A stretch of DNA of 21,781 nucleotides from Prasinococcaceae sp. CCMP 1430 (GCA_013416795.1 RQSC01001099.1:1-21781); one strand, 5' to 3'; numbered from the stretch's first letter, positions 16,748-21,781 are shown. Made by a program: numbers and translations. The notes: generated by a model not told the origin, from the sequence alone.

Positions 16748-17477
16748 CCTCCGAGAGGAGGGGGTCGGCGGGTGAGTAGGCCGGTCTGAGGGCGGGTGGG
16801 TGGGTGGGTGCGAGAGGCTCGCCCTGCGCGTCAAGTGGCGGCACGCCGCGTGCCCCTGCCTCCCCCCTGCCCCCCCACCCCCTCCCCCACCCATCGCCCA
16901 CAGCCCTTTTCTGTGGCTGTGTTTCGCGGTGGCGCCCCGCGGATCGCGCGCGCGCGCGCGCCGAAACCGCGGATTTCGCGCCGCGCGCAAAAAAACGCCA
17001 TGCGAACGACCCCGTCTTTCTTCCGCGGGCCGAATGAACGCGCGCGGTCGGGCCAAAAAACGAAAGCGCGATATGGTACGTACAGTACAGTCGTACGAGA
17101 ACAAGCATAGCTGGAAGGCAAACTGGGCCTCCAGCGCGCGCGCCCCGCCGTGCGTCCGCGCCTCCGCCTCAGCCTCAGTCAGCCCCGCCCAGACCCTCGC
17201 GCAGAGAGGAGCCCTCGCGCCGGCGCCGCTCGAACCAACCACCAACCACCCAACCACCCAACGCAGCGGCGACTCCTTGCTTGCCCTCCCGTCCCACCCA
17301 CCGACGCCTGGCTGGCTGCTGCGAGCCCAGAGAGATGTCCCGCGACTGCAAAGCAAGGGGGCGCGCGGGTCGTCAGGCGCGTCGGGCACGCCCCACAGCC
17401 GCAGCGGTAAGTTGATCGCCAGCGAGACTGTCCACAGCGCGGCGTGCGTGCGCCAGGCGGGGGAGAGCACCACGCGC

Positions 17478-17478
17478 N
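17478..17478. other. Single-N assembly gap
   Basis: N at 17478 in a GC-repeat context. Confidence 0.9.
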
Positions 17479-17581
17479 GCCGGGAGCGCGGCGGGTGGCC
17501 CGTGGTGGCGCGACCGCCTGGCGCCGCGCCCCCCCAGCCGGCTCCGTGCGTGCACGGGCGCGGGCAGGACTTGGGCAGGCC

Positions 17582-18940
17582 ATGATGCGCTCGTCGCGCG
17601 CGCTCGCGGCGCTAGCACTGGCGTCGGCGCTGGCGTCCGCTTTGCCACGCGCCGCGCTCGCGGGCGAGCCATTCATGGACGCCATCGCCTCTCCGTGCAA
17701 GTGCGAGCGCCTCGAGGAGGACAAGGTCGAGTGCCCCGCCGGGCGCGTGATGCGCGGCCTGGAGACGGGGCGCCAACTCGGCGTGCCGTACGGCCCGGCG
17801 GAGTGCTGTGAGCTCTGCGTGAACGCCGCGCACCATGAGACGGGAGAGGACGCACACACCTGGACGACGGTCACCGTCGACACGGAGGGATGCGACGACG
17901 AGTTTCAGATCCTCGACAGCCCATGGGAGTGCGCCGACGGAACCTTCCTCGTCGCCTTCACGGGCACGCAGCAATTTGGGGAAGTGACGCTCCCCACTTT
18001 GCCCGCGCGCTGCTGCCCGCTCCGCGCCTCCGGCGTCACCGCGGCCGGCCTCCAGATGAGCCGCACGCTGGGCACCTGTGGCTGCTATTGGGATGAGGAG
18101 GCAACGTGCCAAGGGCTCGCGCCTCTGGGCACGAGCTTGCCCTCGGCGCTCGTTGCGGGCTTCAAGTACGTGGTCGAGATGGAGGCTTCCGAGAGCACGT
18201 ACATCCCGCATCTGCCCACGCGCTGCTGCTACGCGTGCGAGCCTCACGCGTCGCCATTTCCGCGCGCGTGGCTGAGCTCCGAGTGGGCGCTCGCGCTGGT
18301 GGTGCTCGCGGGCTTCGTGCTGGGATGCTGCGCACGTCTTTTCGTGTGCGCGCCGAGCGCCAGACGAGGTGCTCGAGGCGGCGGGAGCGCACACACTCCG
18401 CTGCTCAACATCGAGACGCACAGGGGGCTGCTGGACAGCTCCGACAGCTCCGACGACTCGTCGGAAGAGGAGGATTCCGATGACGAGGGCGGCGAGCAAG
18501 GCAGCGAGGAGGGCGAGGGCGAGCGCGAGGGCGAGGGTGAGGGCGAGGGTGCCGACGGCGGCGAGGAAGGCGCAGATTCGGGCAGCGATGGTGCCGACAC
18601 CAACTTCGATGCCGGTGGCTCTGCTGCAGAAGCGTCGGATGAGGAGGTGGAAGAGCACGCGGAGCGCGCGATTGACATCGAGCAAGGCGCCGTGCCTTCC
18701 GAGTCCGATGCGGACAAGGACGTGTCAATCCCGATGCCTGACAAGGCCGCCGGTGCTGCTTCGGGCGGCAACGAGCTGCTGCGCGGGACCGAGTGCGTGG
18801 TGTGCATGGCCAAGCCGGTACAGGTGGTGTGCGTGCCCTGCGGCCATGCCTGCATGTGCAAAAAGTGCGGAAAGCGCGTTCCCACGTGCCCGGTGTGCAG
18901 GGTGGACATCCTGCGGAGGCAGAAGCTCTTCATTGGCTGA
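17582..18940 (+). CDS. Type I membrane RING E3 ubiquitin ligase: signal peptide, Cys-rich three-repeat ectodomain, TM helix, acidic linker, C3HC4 RING
   Basis: Signal peptide MMRSSRALAALALASALASALPRAALA; TM WALALVVLAGFVLGCCARLFV (~18284-18350); terminal RING CVVCMAKPVQVVCVPCGHACMCKKCGKRVPTCPVCR..I....KLF (18794-18898) of the IAP/MUL1/RNF34-like type. Confidence 0.88.
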   Translation: MMRSSRALAALALASALASALPRAALAGEPFMDAIASPCKCERLEEDKVECPAGRVMRGLETGRQLGVPYGPAECCELCVNAAHHETGEDAHTWTTVTVDTEGCDDEFQILDSPWECADGTFLVAFTGTQQFGEVTLPTLPARCCPLRASGVTAAGLQMSRTLGTCGCYWDEEATCQGLAPLGTSLPSALVAGFKYVVEMEASESTYIPHLPTRCCYACEPHASPFPRAWLSSEWALALVVLAGFVLGCCARLFVCAPSARRGARGGGSAHTPLLNIETHRGLLDSSDSSDDSSEEEDSDDEGGEQGSEEGEGEREGEGEGEGADGGEEGADSGSDGADTNFDAGGSAAEASDEEVEEHAERAIDIEQGAVPSESDADKDVSIPMPDKAAGAASGGNELLRGTECVVCMAKPVQVVCVPCGHACMCKKCGKRVPTCPVCRVDILRRQKLFIG

Positions 18941-19073
18941 GAGAGTATCACCTGGGTATCCCACTGCACGATACCTCGAGCGTCTGGCACCACCTCTGTC
19001 CCGCGCTCATGCTTGTACATTCCTTTGCCCCAAGCGCATCGTCCTACCAACGTGACAGTGTACTCGACGGGCA

Positions 19074-19078
19074 TGTAA
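19074..19078 (+). terminator. TGTAA polyadenylation signal (second copy at 19156-19160)
   Basis: About 134 nt after the RING gene stop. Confidence 0.55.
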
Positions 19079-19233
19079 ATTTTCTCTCCGCCGAGGGATG
19101 CCCATGCCGGCAGGCCTCCTCGGCGGGGCAGTGTAGAGGTGCTCGCAGCACAGATTGTAAGAGAGGTAAGAGTACGAAGAATGAACATTATACAGTGCTG
19201 ACGACGCACGTACGTCGCCACCGTTGACGTCGC

Positions 19234-20154
19234 TCAGCCCATCGCGCTGCCGGCCGCTTTATCCCCCTGCGCATGGCACGCGTCTGAGGCATCAAAGAAT
19301 ATGTCGCCGTCAGCGTCGGGCGCCGGCGTGCGCTTGAGCGCGTCCTCGGCGCGCATGCGCGCCGCGTAGGCGGCATGATCGTAGGAGTCGTCAATGCGCT
19401 TGCCACTGGGACACAGCCCCAGCGCGGCGAGCTGCTCAGGCGTGTACAGCTGCTGCAGGAGCTCCGAACCCTTATCGCCCGCCTTCTGGGAGGAGCTCTG
19501 CTTGGGGAAGCAGAACACGATCTTCCCCCTCGTGCGTGCTTCAATGAACGGCGAGATGATGCGCCAGAAAGCGTAGAATATGCGTGGCGGATCCCACAGC
19601 ACTGCTTCGCCAAGCGACTCCGGGTAGCAGTCCTGCAGCACGCGGAGCGTCTCGCGGCTCGTCTTTATCGGCGGGGCATTGCGCAGGCTGTAGCCCTTGA
19701 AGTCAATGATCCAGCGGAACCTTGAGACCGCCTCGGGATAGCTGCGGCCAGCTGCGGTCTCCTCCCTCTCCAGGGCCGTTCTCGCGGATTCGAGGGTATA
19801 AACGAGGTTGCGGATGTTGCCCTCGTGGTCCTTTGTGTTCTCGTTGCGCGGTCGCATGAGGATGGTGGGCAGGCCGTCGGCAGCACGGAAGTCCGCGCGA
19901 TACATCTTGCCCGTCTTCATCTCGTGCTCCACGTCCTCCCAGACGAGAGTTTCGGGCCTCGCGCGCGCGCGCCACTTGAGCGCCCCCCGCAGCAGTGCAT
20001 CGGCCTTGCTCATGTCGTGGCCGCGCGCGCGCAGGAAGCGCGCCGCCGTCCCCACGCAGCCGTCGGCGTCGAGGCCCACCCGCTCGCACAGTGACCGCGC
20101 GAGCGCAGCCTCCTCCGGCGAGCCACGCTCCACCTTGCGCTTTTGCGCACCCAT
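19234..20154 (-). CDS. CRAL-TRIO/Sec14-like lipid-transfer protein (Pdr16/Sfh3-like)
   Basis: RFLRARGHDMSKADALLRGALKWR (CRAL-TRIO N), EMKTGKMY, ILMRPRNEN, LVYTLESA, WIIDFKGYS, LQDCYPESLG, PPRIFYAFWRIISPFIEARTRGKIVF. Confidence 0.95.
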   Translation of the reverse strand: MGAQKRKVERGSPEEAALARSLCERVGLDADGCVGTAARFLRARGHDMSKADALLRGALKWRARARPETLVWEDVEHEMKTGKMYRADFRAADGLPTILMRPRNENTKDHEGNIRNLVYTLESARTALEREETAAGRSYPEAVSRFRWIIDFKGYSLRNAPPIKTSRETLRVLQDCYPESLGEAVLWDPPRIFYAFWRIISPFIEARTRGKIVFCFPKQSSSQKAGDKGSELLQQLYTPEQLAALGLCPSGKRIDDSYDHAAYAARMRAEDALKRTPAPDADGDIFFDASDACHAQGDKAAGSAMG

Positions 20155-21140
20155 GACGGCCGCGCCTTCCCGCTCGCCCCCCCCGTTCGGGCACGCAGGC
20201 GCACGCTCAAGGCGCGACCGCAGCGGCGCCCAACGCCCACCACCTGCGCCTGCACCTGCACCAGCGCCAGCGCCGCAGCCGCCAGCGCATTGGAGATGCC
20301 CGGGATACCCAACGCCGCAATGGTGTCGGCTGGCGTCATGCGCACCTTTGCGTCATCCAGCAGGCCGAGGATGCGATTCACGCGCTGCTCACCCATGCGC
20401 GGCAGGGCCTCAATGGCCTCGCGGTGGGCGGCCAGGCGAAAGAAGTCGGGTGGCGATGACACGATGCCGGCCTCCACCATTAGCTCCACCGTATTCTCGC
20501 CGATGCCTGCCTTCAGTGCCCGGGCGAAGTGCTGCAGCGCGCGGCCAGTGCGCAAGGGGCACTGCACGTTGCGGCACCACATGGTGAGCACGCTCTGCCC
20601 ATCGCTTTCGTCCATCTCACCGTCTTCCTCGCCCCTGTCCTCGACGCTGACATCGCCGCCAGCGGCTGCGACAACCCGCTCCCACTCGGGTAGAACAGGG
20701 CCGTGTTGCTCGACGTGCAGGACGCTGCCGCAGCCAGGGCACTTGGAGGGCGCGACGAAGCCGTCCGCCTGCTCGCCCCGAAGCCCTTCGACCGGTCCAA
20801 GTACGCGCGGGATAACATCGCCGGCGCGCTCAATCACGACCGTGTCGCCCTCGCGCACGCCCATGCGCAGAGCGTGGCCGACGTTGTGCAGGGTCGTGCG
20901 CGAGATGAGCGCGCCGCCGATCTCTACCGGGCGCACGCGCGCAACGGGCACCACGTGGCCCGTGCGCCCCACCGCCACGCTCAGGTTCTCGAGCACGGAC
21001 GTGGCCTGCCGCGCGGGCGGCTTGAGCGCCACCGCCCATCGCGGGTCGGAAGACGTCGATCCCATCAACCGCTGCGTCTCGGCGCTGTCCATCTTCAGCA
21101 CGGCGCCGTCCGTGTCGAAGTCGCACTCGTCGCGCGCGGC
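20010..21140 (-). CDS. ligA: NAD+-dependent (bacterial LigA-type) DNA ligase, partial
   Basis: FDTDGAVLK (motif IV), PRWAVALK (motif V), VGRTGHVVPVA, TTLHN, GDTVVIERAGDVIP (OB fold, motif VI), C4 zinc finger CPGC...CRNVQC, HhH motifs GIGENTV, LPRMGEQRV and ALGIPGI. The N-terminal adenylation half is cut by N at 21142. Similarity ends near 20260; the frame continues to 20010. Confidence 0.93.
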   Translation of the reverse strand, partial: AARDECDFDTDGAVLKMDSAETQRLMGSTSSDPRWAVALKPPARQATSVLENLSVAVGRTGHVVPVARVRPVEIGGALISRTTLHNVGHALRMGVREGDTVVIERAGDVIPRVLGPVEGLRGEQADGFVAPSKCPGCGSVLHVEQHGPVLPEWERVVAAAGGDVSVEDRGEEDGEMDESDGQSVLTMWCRNVQCPLRTGRALQHFARALKAGIGENTVELMVEAGIVSSPPDFFRLAAHREAIEALPRMGEQRVNRILGLLDDAKVRMTPADTIAALGIPGISNALAAAALALVQVQAQVVGVGRRCGRALSVRLRARTGGASGKARPSWVRKSARWSVARRRRLRSRGHCASGWASTPTAAWGRRRASCARAATT

Positions 21141-21141
21141 G

Positions 21142-21142
21142 N
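21142..21142. other. Single-N assembly gap separating divergent ligA and PDH E2
   Basis: Both flanking genes lose their 5' ends at this N. Confidence 0.9.
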
Positions 21143-21143
21143 C

Positions 21144-21781
21144 GCGGCGCGGCGCGCGAGGCGCGCGCCGCCCGTCGCGGCAATCAGGGAGGTCCCAATG
21201 CCTGCGCTGTCGTCGACCATGACGGGTACGGGCGCAGCGGTGACGTGGGCGCGCGCGGGGGCGCGGTAGCGGATGCAGGAGCGCGCGCCAGCGATGACGG
21301 CGCGCGCGCTCTGCTGCGGGACGCGCCTCTTTCGCGCGCGCTCGGGCCACGCTAACTCCTGCAATGCGCCCCCGCGCGTCCTTCGACTGGCTCTCGTGCG
21401 CCCCGCTCACGCGCTGCTAACCCCCCGCCTCCTTCGGACCTCGTGATGGCCGCCGCGATCGCGCGCGTGTTTGCTCGCGCGGTGCTCGCAGAGGGCAAGA
21501 TCGTGAGCTGGCTCGTGGAGGAGGGCGACGAGATGAGCAAGGGCGACGCCATCGTGGTCGTCGAGTCGGACAAGGCTGACATGGACGTCGAGGTGTTCTA
21601 CGACGGCATCCTAGCGGCTGTTCTGGTCGATGAGGGCGAGACCGCGCCCGTGGGCGCGCCCATCGGCGTGCTGGCTGACACTGAGGCCGAGATCGAGGAG
21701 GCCAAGGCCAAGTACGCCGGCGGCGCGCCAGCGGCCGCCGCTCCCGCTGCCCCCGCTGCCGCCGAGCCGGCGCCCGCGCCT
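21144..21781 (+). CDS. LTA2: Plastid pyruvate dehydrogenase E2 (dihydrolipoyllysine acetyltransferase), partial; exons <21144-21225 and 21492->21781
   Basis: The spliced product reads AIREVPMPALSSTMT-E-GKIVSWLVEEGDEMSKGDAIVVVESDKADMDVEVFYDGILA, a plastid-type lipoyl domain with lipoyl-Lys at 21572-21574, then an Ala/Pro linker. An Arg/Ala-rich transit-peptide remnant lies upstream. Confidence 0.95.
21226..21491 (+). other. Spliceosomal intron (PDH E2)
   Basis: GTACGG donor, GCTAAC branch motif at ~21416-21421, CGCAG acceptor; splicing restores the conserved TMTEGKIV exactly. Confidence 0.92.

Follow-up and report, generated by a model that had tools for sequence, protein, structure and literature searches.

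The bacterial LigA of E. coli (structure 2OWO) is our point of reference for NAD+-dependent DNA ligases, with its succession of Ia, adenylation, OB, zinc finger, HhH and BRCT domains. Members of the same family also occur outside bacteria, in giant viruses (mimivirus, entomopoxviruses and iridoviruses) and in phages, and the published viral enzymes cluster with gammaproteobacterial and phage sequences (PMC2806865). In eukaryotes the class is sporadic; the tree of Yutin and Koonin (2009) contained NAD-dependent ligases of Ostreococcus lucimarinus and Dictyostelium (PMC2806865). Neither the gene family nor its presence in green algae is new. For the sealing of organelle DNA, reviews of organellar replication list the ATP-dependent LIG1 alone, and the plastid ligase of Arabidopsis has been called unclear (PMC4166229, PMC3914683). 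Our literature searches turned up no characterisation of a LigA from plants or algae, and the genome paper of Prasinoderma coloniale does not mention a ligase.

The DNA that we analysed, the window from here on, is a stretch of 21,781 nucleotides from Prasinococcaceae sp. CCMP 1430. It contains part of a LigA-like ligase close to a CRAL-TRIO gene. Our results suggest, with a probability of about 85%, that window positions 20278-21141 are a misplaced internal 864-base piece of a single-copy, complete and expressed nuclear LigA gene of Prasinoderma coloniale. The ligase features of the window are the following.

20278..21141, minus strand: LigA internal block (codons 20280-21140), equal to residues 335-622 of the 800-residue protein P0403.
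21021..21110, minus strand: C-terminal end of the adenylation domain, about 45 residues (Pfam PF01653 profile positions 211-252, E 4e-8).
21093-21110, minus strand: motif IV, DGAVLK, aligned to E. coli D285/G286/K290.
21021-21038, minus strand: motif V, WAVALK, aligned to E. coli K314.
20772..20999, minus strand: full OB fold including GRTG (Pfam PF03120, E 4.9e-24; 84 bits, cut-off 32.9).
20802-20828, minus strand: motif VI, RAGDVIPRV, within the OB fold.
20559..20741, minus strand: Cys4 zinc finger, CPGC...CRNVQC, aligned to E. coli C408/C411/C426/C432.
About 20577-20729, minus strand: acidic loop of 51 residues between Cys2 and Cys3 (P0403 residues 472-522).
20280..20558, minus strand: beginning of the HhH domain, some two and a half repeats (E. 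coli about 428-530; weak Pfam HHH_5).

The block 20280-21140 is one open frame on the minus strand, and its best match among solved structures is E. coli LigA (2OWO residues 279-530, E 2.3e-40). The initial annotation had recognised LigA motifs IV to VI, an OB fold, a C4 zinc finger and HhH repeats here, and the Pfam profiles and the alignment to 2OWO confirm all of them. It had also described the composition as GC rich and host like, which is borne out: G+C is 0.70-0.72 in the ligase block, the same as in its flanks and in the rest of the window. The block itself has neither an Ia domain nor KxDG, it stops before the HhH domain is finished, and it has no BRCT domain; its score on the NCBIfam model NF005932, 200.6 bits, stays below the cut-off (369). 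It is not a complete gene. Past the HhH part the true gene continues with RLAVQVGTLAGL..., which lies outside the window and can be read in L004 (a public contig described below) and in the proteins P0284 and P0403.

The complete gene is found elsewhere. A metagenome scan with the fragment returned a single distant bacterial locus (L001, 33%). A length-limited protein search with the bare fragment returned nothing closer than 39% identity; a search with the longer open reading frame, in which the ligase part was treated as a region, returned P0284 (593 aa, 100% identity) and P0285 (731 aa, 69%). P0403 shares a 90% cluster with P0284, and over 288 residues the window block is 100% identical to it. 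P0403 is the EukProt entry EP00793_Prasinoderma_coloniale_P005698, gene model PRCOL_00004172-RA, with a length of 800 aa. It opens with an Ia-like start (AYYN...SDDAFD), followed by EPKIDG, TRGDG, EVRGE, NARNAASGSLR, the window block, the remaining HhH part and a BRCT-like C-terminus, the same domain order as in E. coli. The protein passes the LigA equivalog model NF005932 with 441.7 bits (cut-off 369), a match that reaches model position 650 of 664; on TIGR00575 it stays below the cut-off (392 against 444).

The adenylation domain of P0403 matches Pfam PF01653 with E 9e-54, the OB fold its profile with E 3e-23, and HHH_5 scores 30.4 bits against a cut-off of 27. EPKIDG (K142), TRGDG, EVRGE, NARNAASGSLR, DGAVLK and WAVALK align to the corresponding E. 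coli residues (motifs I, III, IIIa, IV and V), and P0403 keeps E. coli K115, R136, E173, R200, R208, D285, K290, K314, R333 and R379 as well as the four cysteines, which are conserved in all seven eukaryotic homologues. In the Ia and BRCT domains the likeness is weaker. In the Ia domain, E. coli Y22, H23, D32, Y35 and D36 correspond to P0403 Y19, Y20, D29, F32 and D33; the stretch is not significant alone, and Pfam Nlig-Ia reaches an E of only 0.008. The C-terminus aligns to the E. coli BRCT domain (AGKRVRITG...), and Pfam BRCT gives no match to P0403 even at E 5. The BRCT, Ia and zinc-finger domains of P0403 all fall below the Pfam gathering scores and are therefore diverged compared to bacterial LigA. 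Judged from its residues, P0403 is a complete LigA with a weak BRCT domain, in which every catalytic and DNA-binding element of the family can be recognised, an annotated LigA homologue and as such ordinary in kind. From this conservation one would expect it to seal nicks in the usual three steps: an enzyme-AMP would be formed from NAD+, the AMP would be transferred to the 5' phosphate, and the phosphodiester bond would then be formed.

Apart from its weaker domains, the Prasinoderma ligase differs from bacterial LigA in its low identity (30-35%), in being nuclear encoded and in the length of its zinc-finger loop. Between Cys2 and Cys3 the acidic loop measures 50-56 residues in Prasinoderma, P0121 and P0222; for 165 LigAs from bacteria and viruses the median is 14. 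The loop is 34 residues long in Chlamydomonas sp. UWO241 and 14-17 residues long in P0186 and the streptophyte members. A long loop is something that Prasinoderma has in common with chlorophyte members, whereas streptophyte members combine a short loop with far longer N-termini.

A LigA in an algal assembly raises the question of contamination. LigA is typically bacterial, and the block is bounded by unsupported junctions, so one could argue that a bacterial read or contig was stitched into the algal scaffold. We consider this explanation extremely improbable, for the following reasons. First, among 5.8 billion clustered proteins there is no bacterial relative of P0403 above about 35% identity; the best reach 30-35%. 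Second, both the annotated gene model of P. coloniale and RNA sequencing of the alga contain the same sequence. The RNA run, X15, can be recognised as RNA because the intron of the PDH-E2 gene, described below, is spliced out in it, and it contains a ligase contig of 1,533 nt; a marine metatranscriptome, X16, contains one of 479 nt. Third, a sister species that is abundant in Tara Oceans metagenomes carries an orthologue that is 69% identical over the block and 63% over the whole protein. Its coding sequence is interrupted by a canonical GT-AG spliceosomal intron with a pyrimidine tract, and its neighbours are eukaryotic genes (a diacylglycerol-kinase-domain protein, a WW-domain protein, PfkB, CDC50 and an ABC transporter). 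Fourth, the ligase groups with plant and algal ligases. Because bacterial identity does not exceed 35%, the composition is host like, the gene is expressed and the orthologue has eukaryotic neighbours and an intron, the ligase is a genuine algal nuclear gene and not a contaminant. Hence, a bacterial-type NAD+ ligase of the algal nuclear genome, as the initial annotation had proposed, is indeed what we find. A missing KxDG motif or a lack of expression had been named there as grounds for giving up the idea; the motif is present in the full gene model (EPKIDG, K142), and both RNA runs contain ligase contigs.

The position of the ligase is a different matter. The features on both sides of the block are listed here.

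17444-18940, plus strand: RING (zf-C3HC4_3) gene, which also has a Pfam DUF8241 match.
19234..20154, minus strand: CRAL-TRIO gene (Pfam PF00650, E 7.7e-24).
20278..20288: point at which the ligase block is falsely joined to sequence upstream of the CRAL-TRIO gene, in G+C-rich low-complexity sequence (20240-20290).
21142: single N at the other end of the misplaced block, interrupting exon 1 of the PDH-E2 gene.
21143..21781, plus strand: plastid-type pyruvate dehydrogenase E2 (PDH-E2), lipoyl domain (Pfam Biotin_lipoyl, E 2e-15), with a remnant of exon 1 at 21143-21225, a GT-AG intron at 21226-21490 and exon 2 from 21491.

We compared the contigs of two DNA runs (X1 and X3) and two RNA runs (X15 and X16) with window positions 19000-21781. 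All four runs contain 20278-21141 intact and with zero differences, and in all four both ends of the block run into sequence that is not in the window. The ligase contig of X1 extends beyond the block by 4,296 nt on the left and 293 nt on the right, that of X3 by 4,809 nt and 293 nt. Beyond 21141 the ligase contigs read ATGAGTGCC..., the real upstream codons of the ligase (...AAADAAEALI). Seen from the other side, the CRAL-TRIO contigs of X1 and X3 continue after 20283 with GCGCCCGCCGGCGGCGGCGGC, unlike the window, and the E2 contig of X3 has 1,131 nt of non-window sequence to the left of 21136.

Public data agree with the runs. L004, a 2,118-nt contig of the same organism, matches the window at 20278-21141 only (L004 positions 591-1454), with 100% DNA identity, and the loose ends of the run contigs are exactly the flanks found in L004. 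In L004, L005, L108 and L109 the block is the sole part in common with the 21.8-kb window. Six Tara Oceans scaffolds are 99.3-99.8% identical to the window over about 17471-20288 and diverge beyond; after 20288 they carry up to 1,025 nt of non-ligase sequence, and their upstream parts agree with one another. The join at 20278-20288 is present neither in the contigs of the four runs nor in the six Tara Oceans scaffolds, the same-organism contig or the sister-species loci, bearing in mind that contigs prove presence, not absence, and that a rare real junction could in principle be dropped. Of the sampled words, 2% are absent from all 14 best-matching runs, about the amount that the two junctions would account for. 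We conclude that the join between ligase and CRAL-TRIO gene is an assembly artefact.

It follows that one argument of the initial annotation fails, namely that the physical linkage to a eukaryotic CRAL-TRIO gene places the ligase in the nuclear genome. The two are contiguous without an N in the sequence as written, and to that extent the observation was right; the join itself is absent from all independent data sets that we examined. Similarly, the catalytic KxDG motif and any targeting peptide were thought to lie in the gap at this locus; the rest of the gene, the motif included, is present in the complete model P0403, and none of the data place it in this gap.

Could the junction nevertheless be real in the genome, in the form of a recent segmental duplication that left a truncated, non-functional ligase copy between the CRAL-TRIO gene and the E2 gene, beside the intact gene? 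The left junction is read through without an N, and 100% identity between fragment and intact gene is what one would expect of a very recent copy. Against such a copy speaks, apart from the junction words that are missing from all 14 runs containing 98% of the stretch, likely source runs among them, that the ligase contigs cross both ends of the block without a fork. The depth of the ligase block contig is 366, compared to 374 for the contig of the single-copy CRAL-TRIO gene, and therefore the reads contain one copy of the block. Such an insertion would, moreover, have removed 1 kb or more of the DNA between the genes, together with the E2 gene's 5' end. A duplication is very unlikely on these grounds.

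It is also conceivable that the order of the scaffold is right and that its sequence has collapsed. The complete ligase would then lie more than 1 kb from the CRAL-TRIO gene, in the gap between the CRAL-TRIO and PDH-E2 genes, and the gap filler would have recovered only its middle. Gap fillers use read pairs anchored in the flanks, the sequence that they fill in often comes from nearby, and a gap that was only partly closed typically leaves a single N like the one at 21142. Yet the ligase contigs of X1 and X3 go 4.3-4.8 kb past 20278 without reaching the CRAL-TRIO gene, and the 1,025 nt that truly lie upstream of that gene are unlike the ligase loci. In the sister species, the 17.5-kb ligase locus (5 kb upstream and 10 kb downstream) contains none of the other genes of the window. 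A collapsed gap is hence unlikely, although not as far-fetched as a duplication.

Our preferred reading remains a piece of LigA that comes from elsewhere in the genome. The assembly would have put this piece into the gap that separates the CRAL-TRIO and PDH-E2 genes; on the left, G+C-rich microhomology of a few bases would have served for the join, and on the right an N would have remained. At its present locus the piece is neither a truncated gene nor a gene neighbour, and the window here lacks at least 1 kb of true sequence and contains 864 nt from elsewhere. The main value of what appears to be a truncated ligase next to a CRAL-TRIO gene is accordingly a correction. Behind the artefact, 1 kb or more of genuine intergenic sequence is hidden, together with the PDH-E2 gene's 5' end, and gene models drawn up at this locus would be wrong. 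The assembly of the window consists of at least 184 pieces, whereas the genome paper of P. coloniale describes a PacBio assembly with 22 chromosomes; therefore the window seems to stem from another assembly, one in more pieces.

In three runs (two DNA and one RNA) the ligase contig ends at the same base, 293 nt past 21141. This common stop corresponds to about position 298 of L004, where L004 leaves the annotated frame, and marks the edge of an odd segment. Positions 1-300 of L004 contain N10, T10 and about 100 nt of AT-rich sequence after EVRGEI, as well as two compensating frameshifts around 66 nt. We take the two frameshifts to be assembly errors because P0403 and the sister species are in frame there. 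We also considered the AT-rich stretch as a P. coloniale intron and rejected it: no AG acceptor fits the annotated protein, and N10 with T10 suggests a chimera. Chimerism or an error in the scaffold seems a better description of this segment than an intron or a pseudogene.

The exact CRAL-TRIO protein occurs on 15 contigs and always beside the RING gene; the six that we show are Tara Oceans scaffolds (L111-L116), in all of which the two genes adjoin. The CRAL-TRIO gene is a true neighbour of the RING E3 gene, not of the ligase. In X15 a transcript contig covers 19175-20173 over the CRAL-TRIO gene. Positions 1-1025 of L111 represent the true sequence upstream of window position 20288. They have 76% G+C, are apparently non-coding and contain an AT-rich island and a (GT)n run. 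This continuation opens with GCCGCCGCCGCCGGCGGGCGC, as in the culture runs, is common to L112 and L113 at 86-89%, and its 1,025 nt show no similarity to any ligase locus. Among Tara Oceans populations the region upstream of the CRAL-TRIO gene differs by 11-14%, with indels; the adjacent genes are more than 99% identical. On the other side of the block, the spliced junction of the E2 gene joins ACCATGACG to GAGGGC in X15, and a spliced contig is also present in X16. The E2 frame reads ...RRARRAPPVAAIREVPMPALSSTMT; its start codon and most of its transit peptide are missing from the window, cut off by the N at 21142.

Another aspect of our study concerns the relatives of the gene. A scan of 1.84 billion representatives, combined with cluster look-ups, revealed nuclear ligases in three further members of the green lineage.

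Marchantia polymorpha: PTQ31770.1, named DNA ligase (NAD+).
Chlamydomonas sp. UWO241: KAG1671906.1.
Mesotaenium endlicherianum: ME000039S06725.

These orthologues have the same domain set as the Prasinoderma ligase, together with N-terminal extensions, and the annotated green ligases are about 35% identical to the Prasinoderma protein. P0222, a further member, lies on an algal contig alongside kinesin, P450 and syntaxin genes. The initial annotation had warned that its find would lose novelty if orthologues were already annotated in green algae; with these three annotated ligases, and with Ostreococcus in the 2009 tree (PMC2806865), that loss has occurred.

We built trees from green-lineage, bacterial, viral-contig and unnamed sequences, a sample without named cyanobacteria and without Ostreococcus. 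Relatives from a genome scan were mainly Chloroflexota and Actinomycetota, and most of the near-redundant loci of these two phyla were left out of the later tree, as was L033, whose longest open reading frame is not a ligase (branch length 10). The nine green-lineage ligases form one clade in FastTree (99), in a quick IQ-TREE run (SH-aLRT 99, 82 rows) and in a careful search (UFBoot 88, SH-aLRT 100, 59 rows); support in the careful tree is moderate. Within the clade, streptophytes and chlorophytes each form a well-supported subclade, a topology that fits vertical descent from an early green-plant ancestor. The ligase of Prasinoderma sits on a long stem (branch length 1.27). Chloroflexota take the sister position to the green clade with a support of only 26/57.

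For the origin of the ligase, an acquisition from a giant virus had also been suggested. The nine viral contigs that we sampled do not group with the green clade. The green-lineage ligases form a clade of their own away from them, and we reject a giant-virus origin. Two alphaproteobacteria are likewise placed apart from the green clade. One viral sequence shifts between analyses. L096, an IMG/VR contig of 77.8 kb, contains at 1501-2427 a LigA piece that is 39% identical to positions 138-473 of P0403, closer than any other viral match. It falls within the green clade in FastTree and outside it in the IQ-TREE runs, where it has a long branch.

What could a nuclear LigA do in a green alga? Its likeliest role would be the sealing of nicks during replication and repair of plastid and/or mitochondrial DNA. 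We infer import into organelles from the N-terminal extensions of the orthologues (about 30-340 residues), which resemble transit peptides in most members of the clade, and from the bacterial nature of organelle replication. This proposed job, sealing nicks in organelle DNA, is also that of the organelle-targeted DNA ligase 1 of Arabidopsis (LIG1) and Cyanidioschyzon (CmLIG1). However, these two ligases belong to an unrelated cofactor class (ATP) and are of eukaryotic origin.

One could go further and suggest that the LigA clade of Prasinodermophyta, Chlorophyta, streptophyte algae and liverworts is the ancestral nick-sealing ligase of the plastids and/or mitochondria of green plants, present before the three phyla split. 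We regard this as a tentative idea, and would put its chances at somewhat less than even. If it is true, the clade would be the 'missing' organellar ligase of algae and bryophytes. In any case, this clade of nuclear NAD+ ligases, which extends over green algae and bryophytes, has been little discussed, and it offers a plastid-ligase candidate that can be tested cheaply in Chlamydomonas or Marchantia.

An organellar role is plausible because the orthologues carry extensions in front of the ligase, and these vary considerably in length. They comprise about 30 residues in P0186, about 100 in P0121 and Chlamydomonas sp. UWO241, and about 320-340 in Marchantia and P0136. P0403 starts directly at the Ia domain without a presequence, and part of the 5' end may be missing from the P. 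coloniale model. In the sister species the orthologue begins with a transit-peptide-like presequence of 55 residues, whose first 50 include 12 arginines, 13 alanines and no acidic residue.
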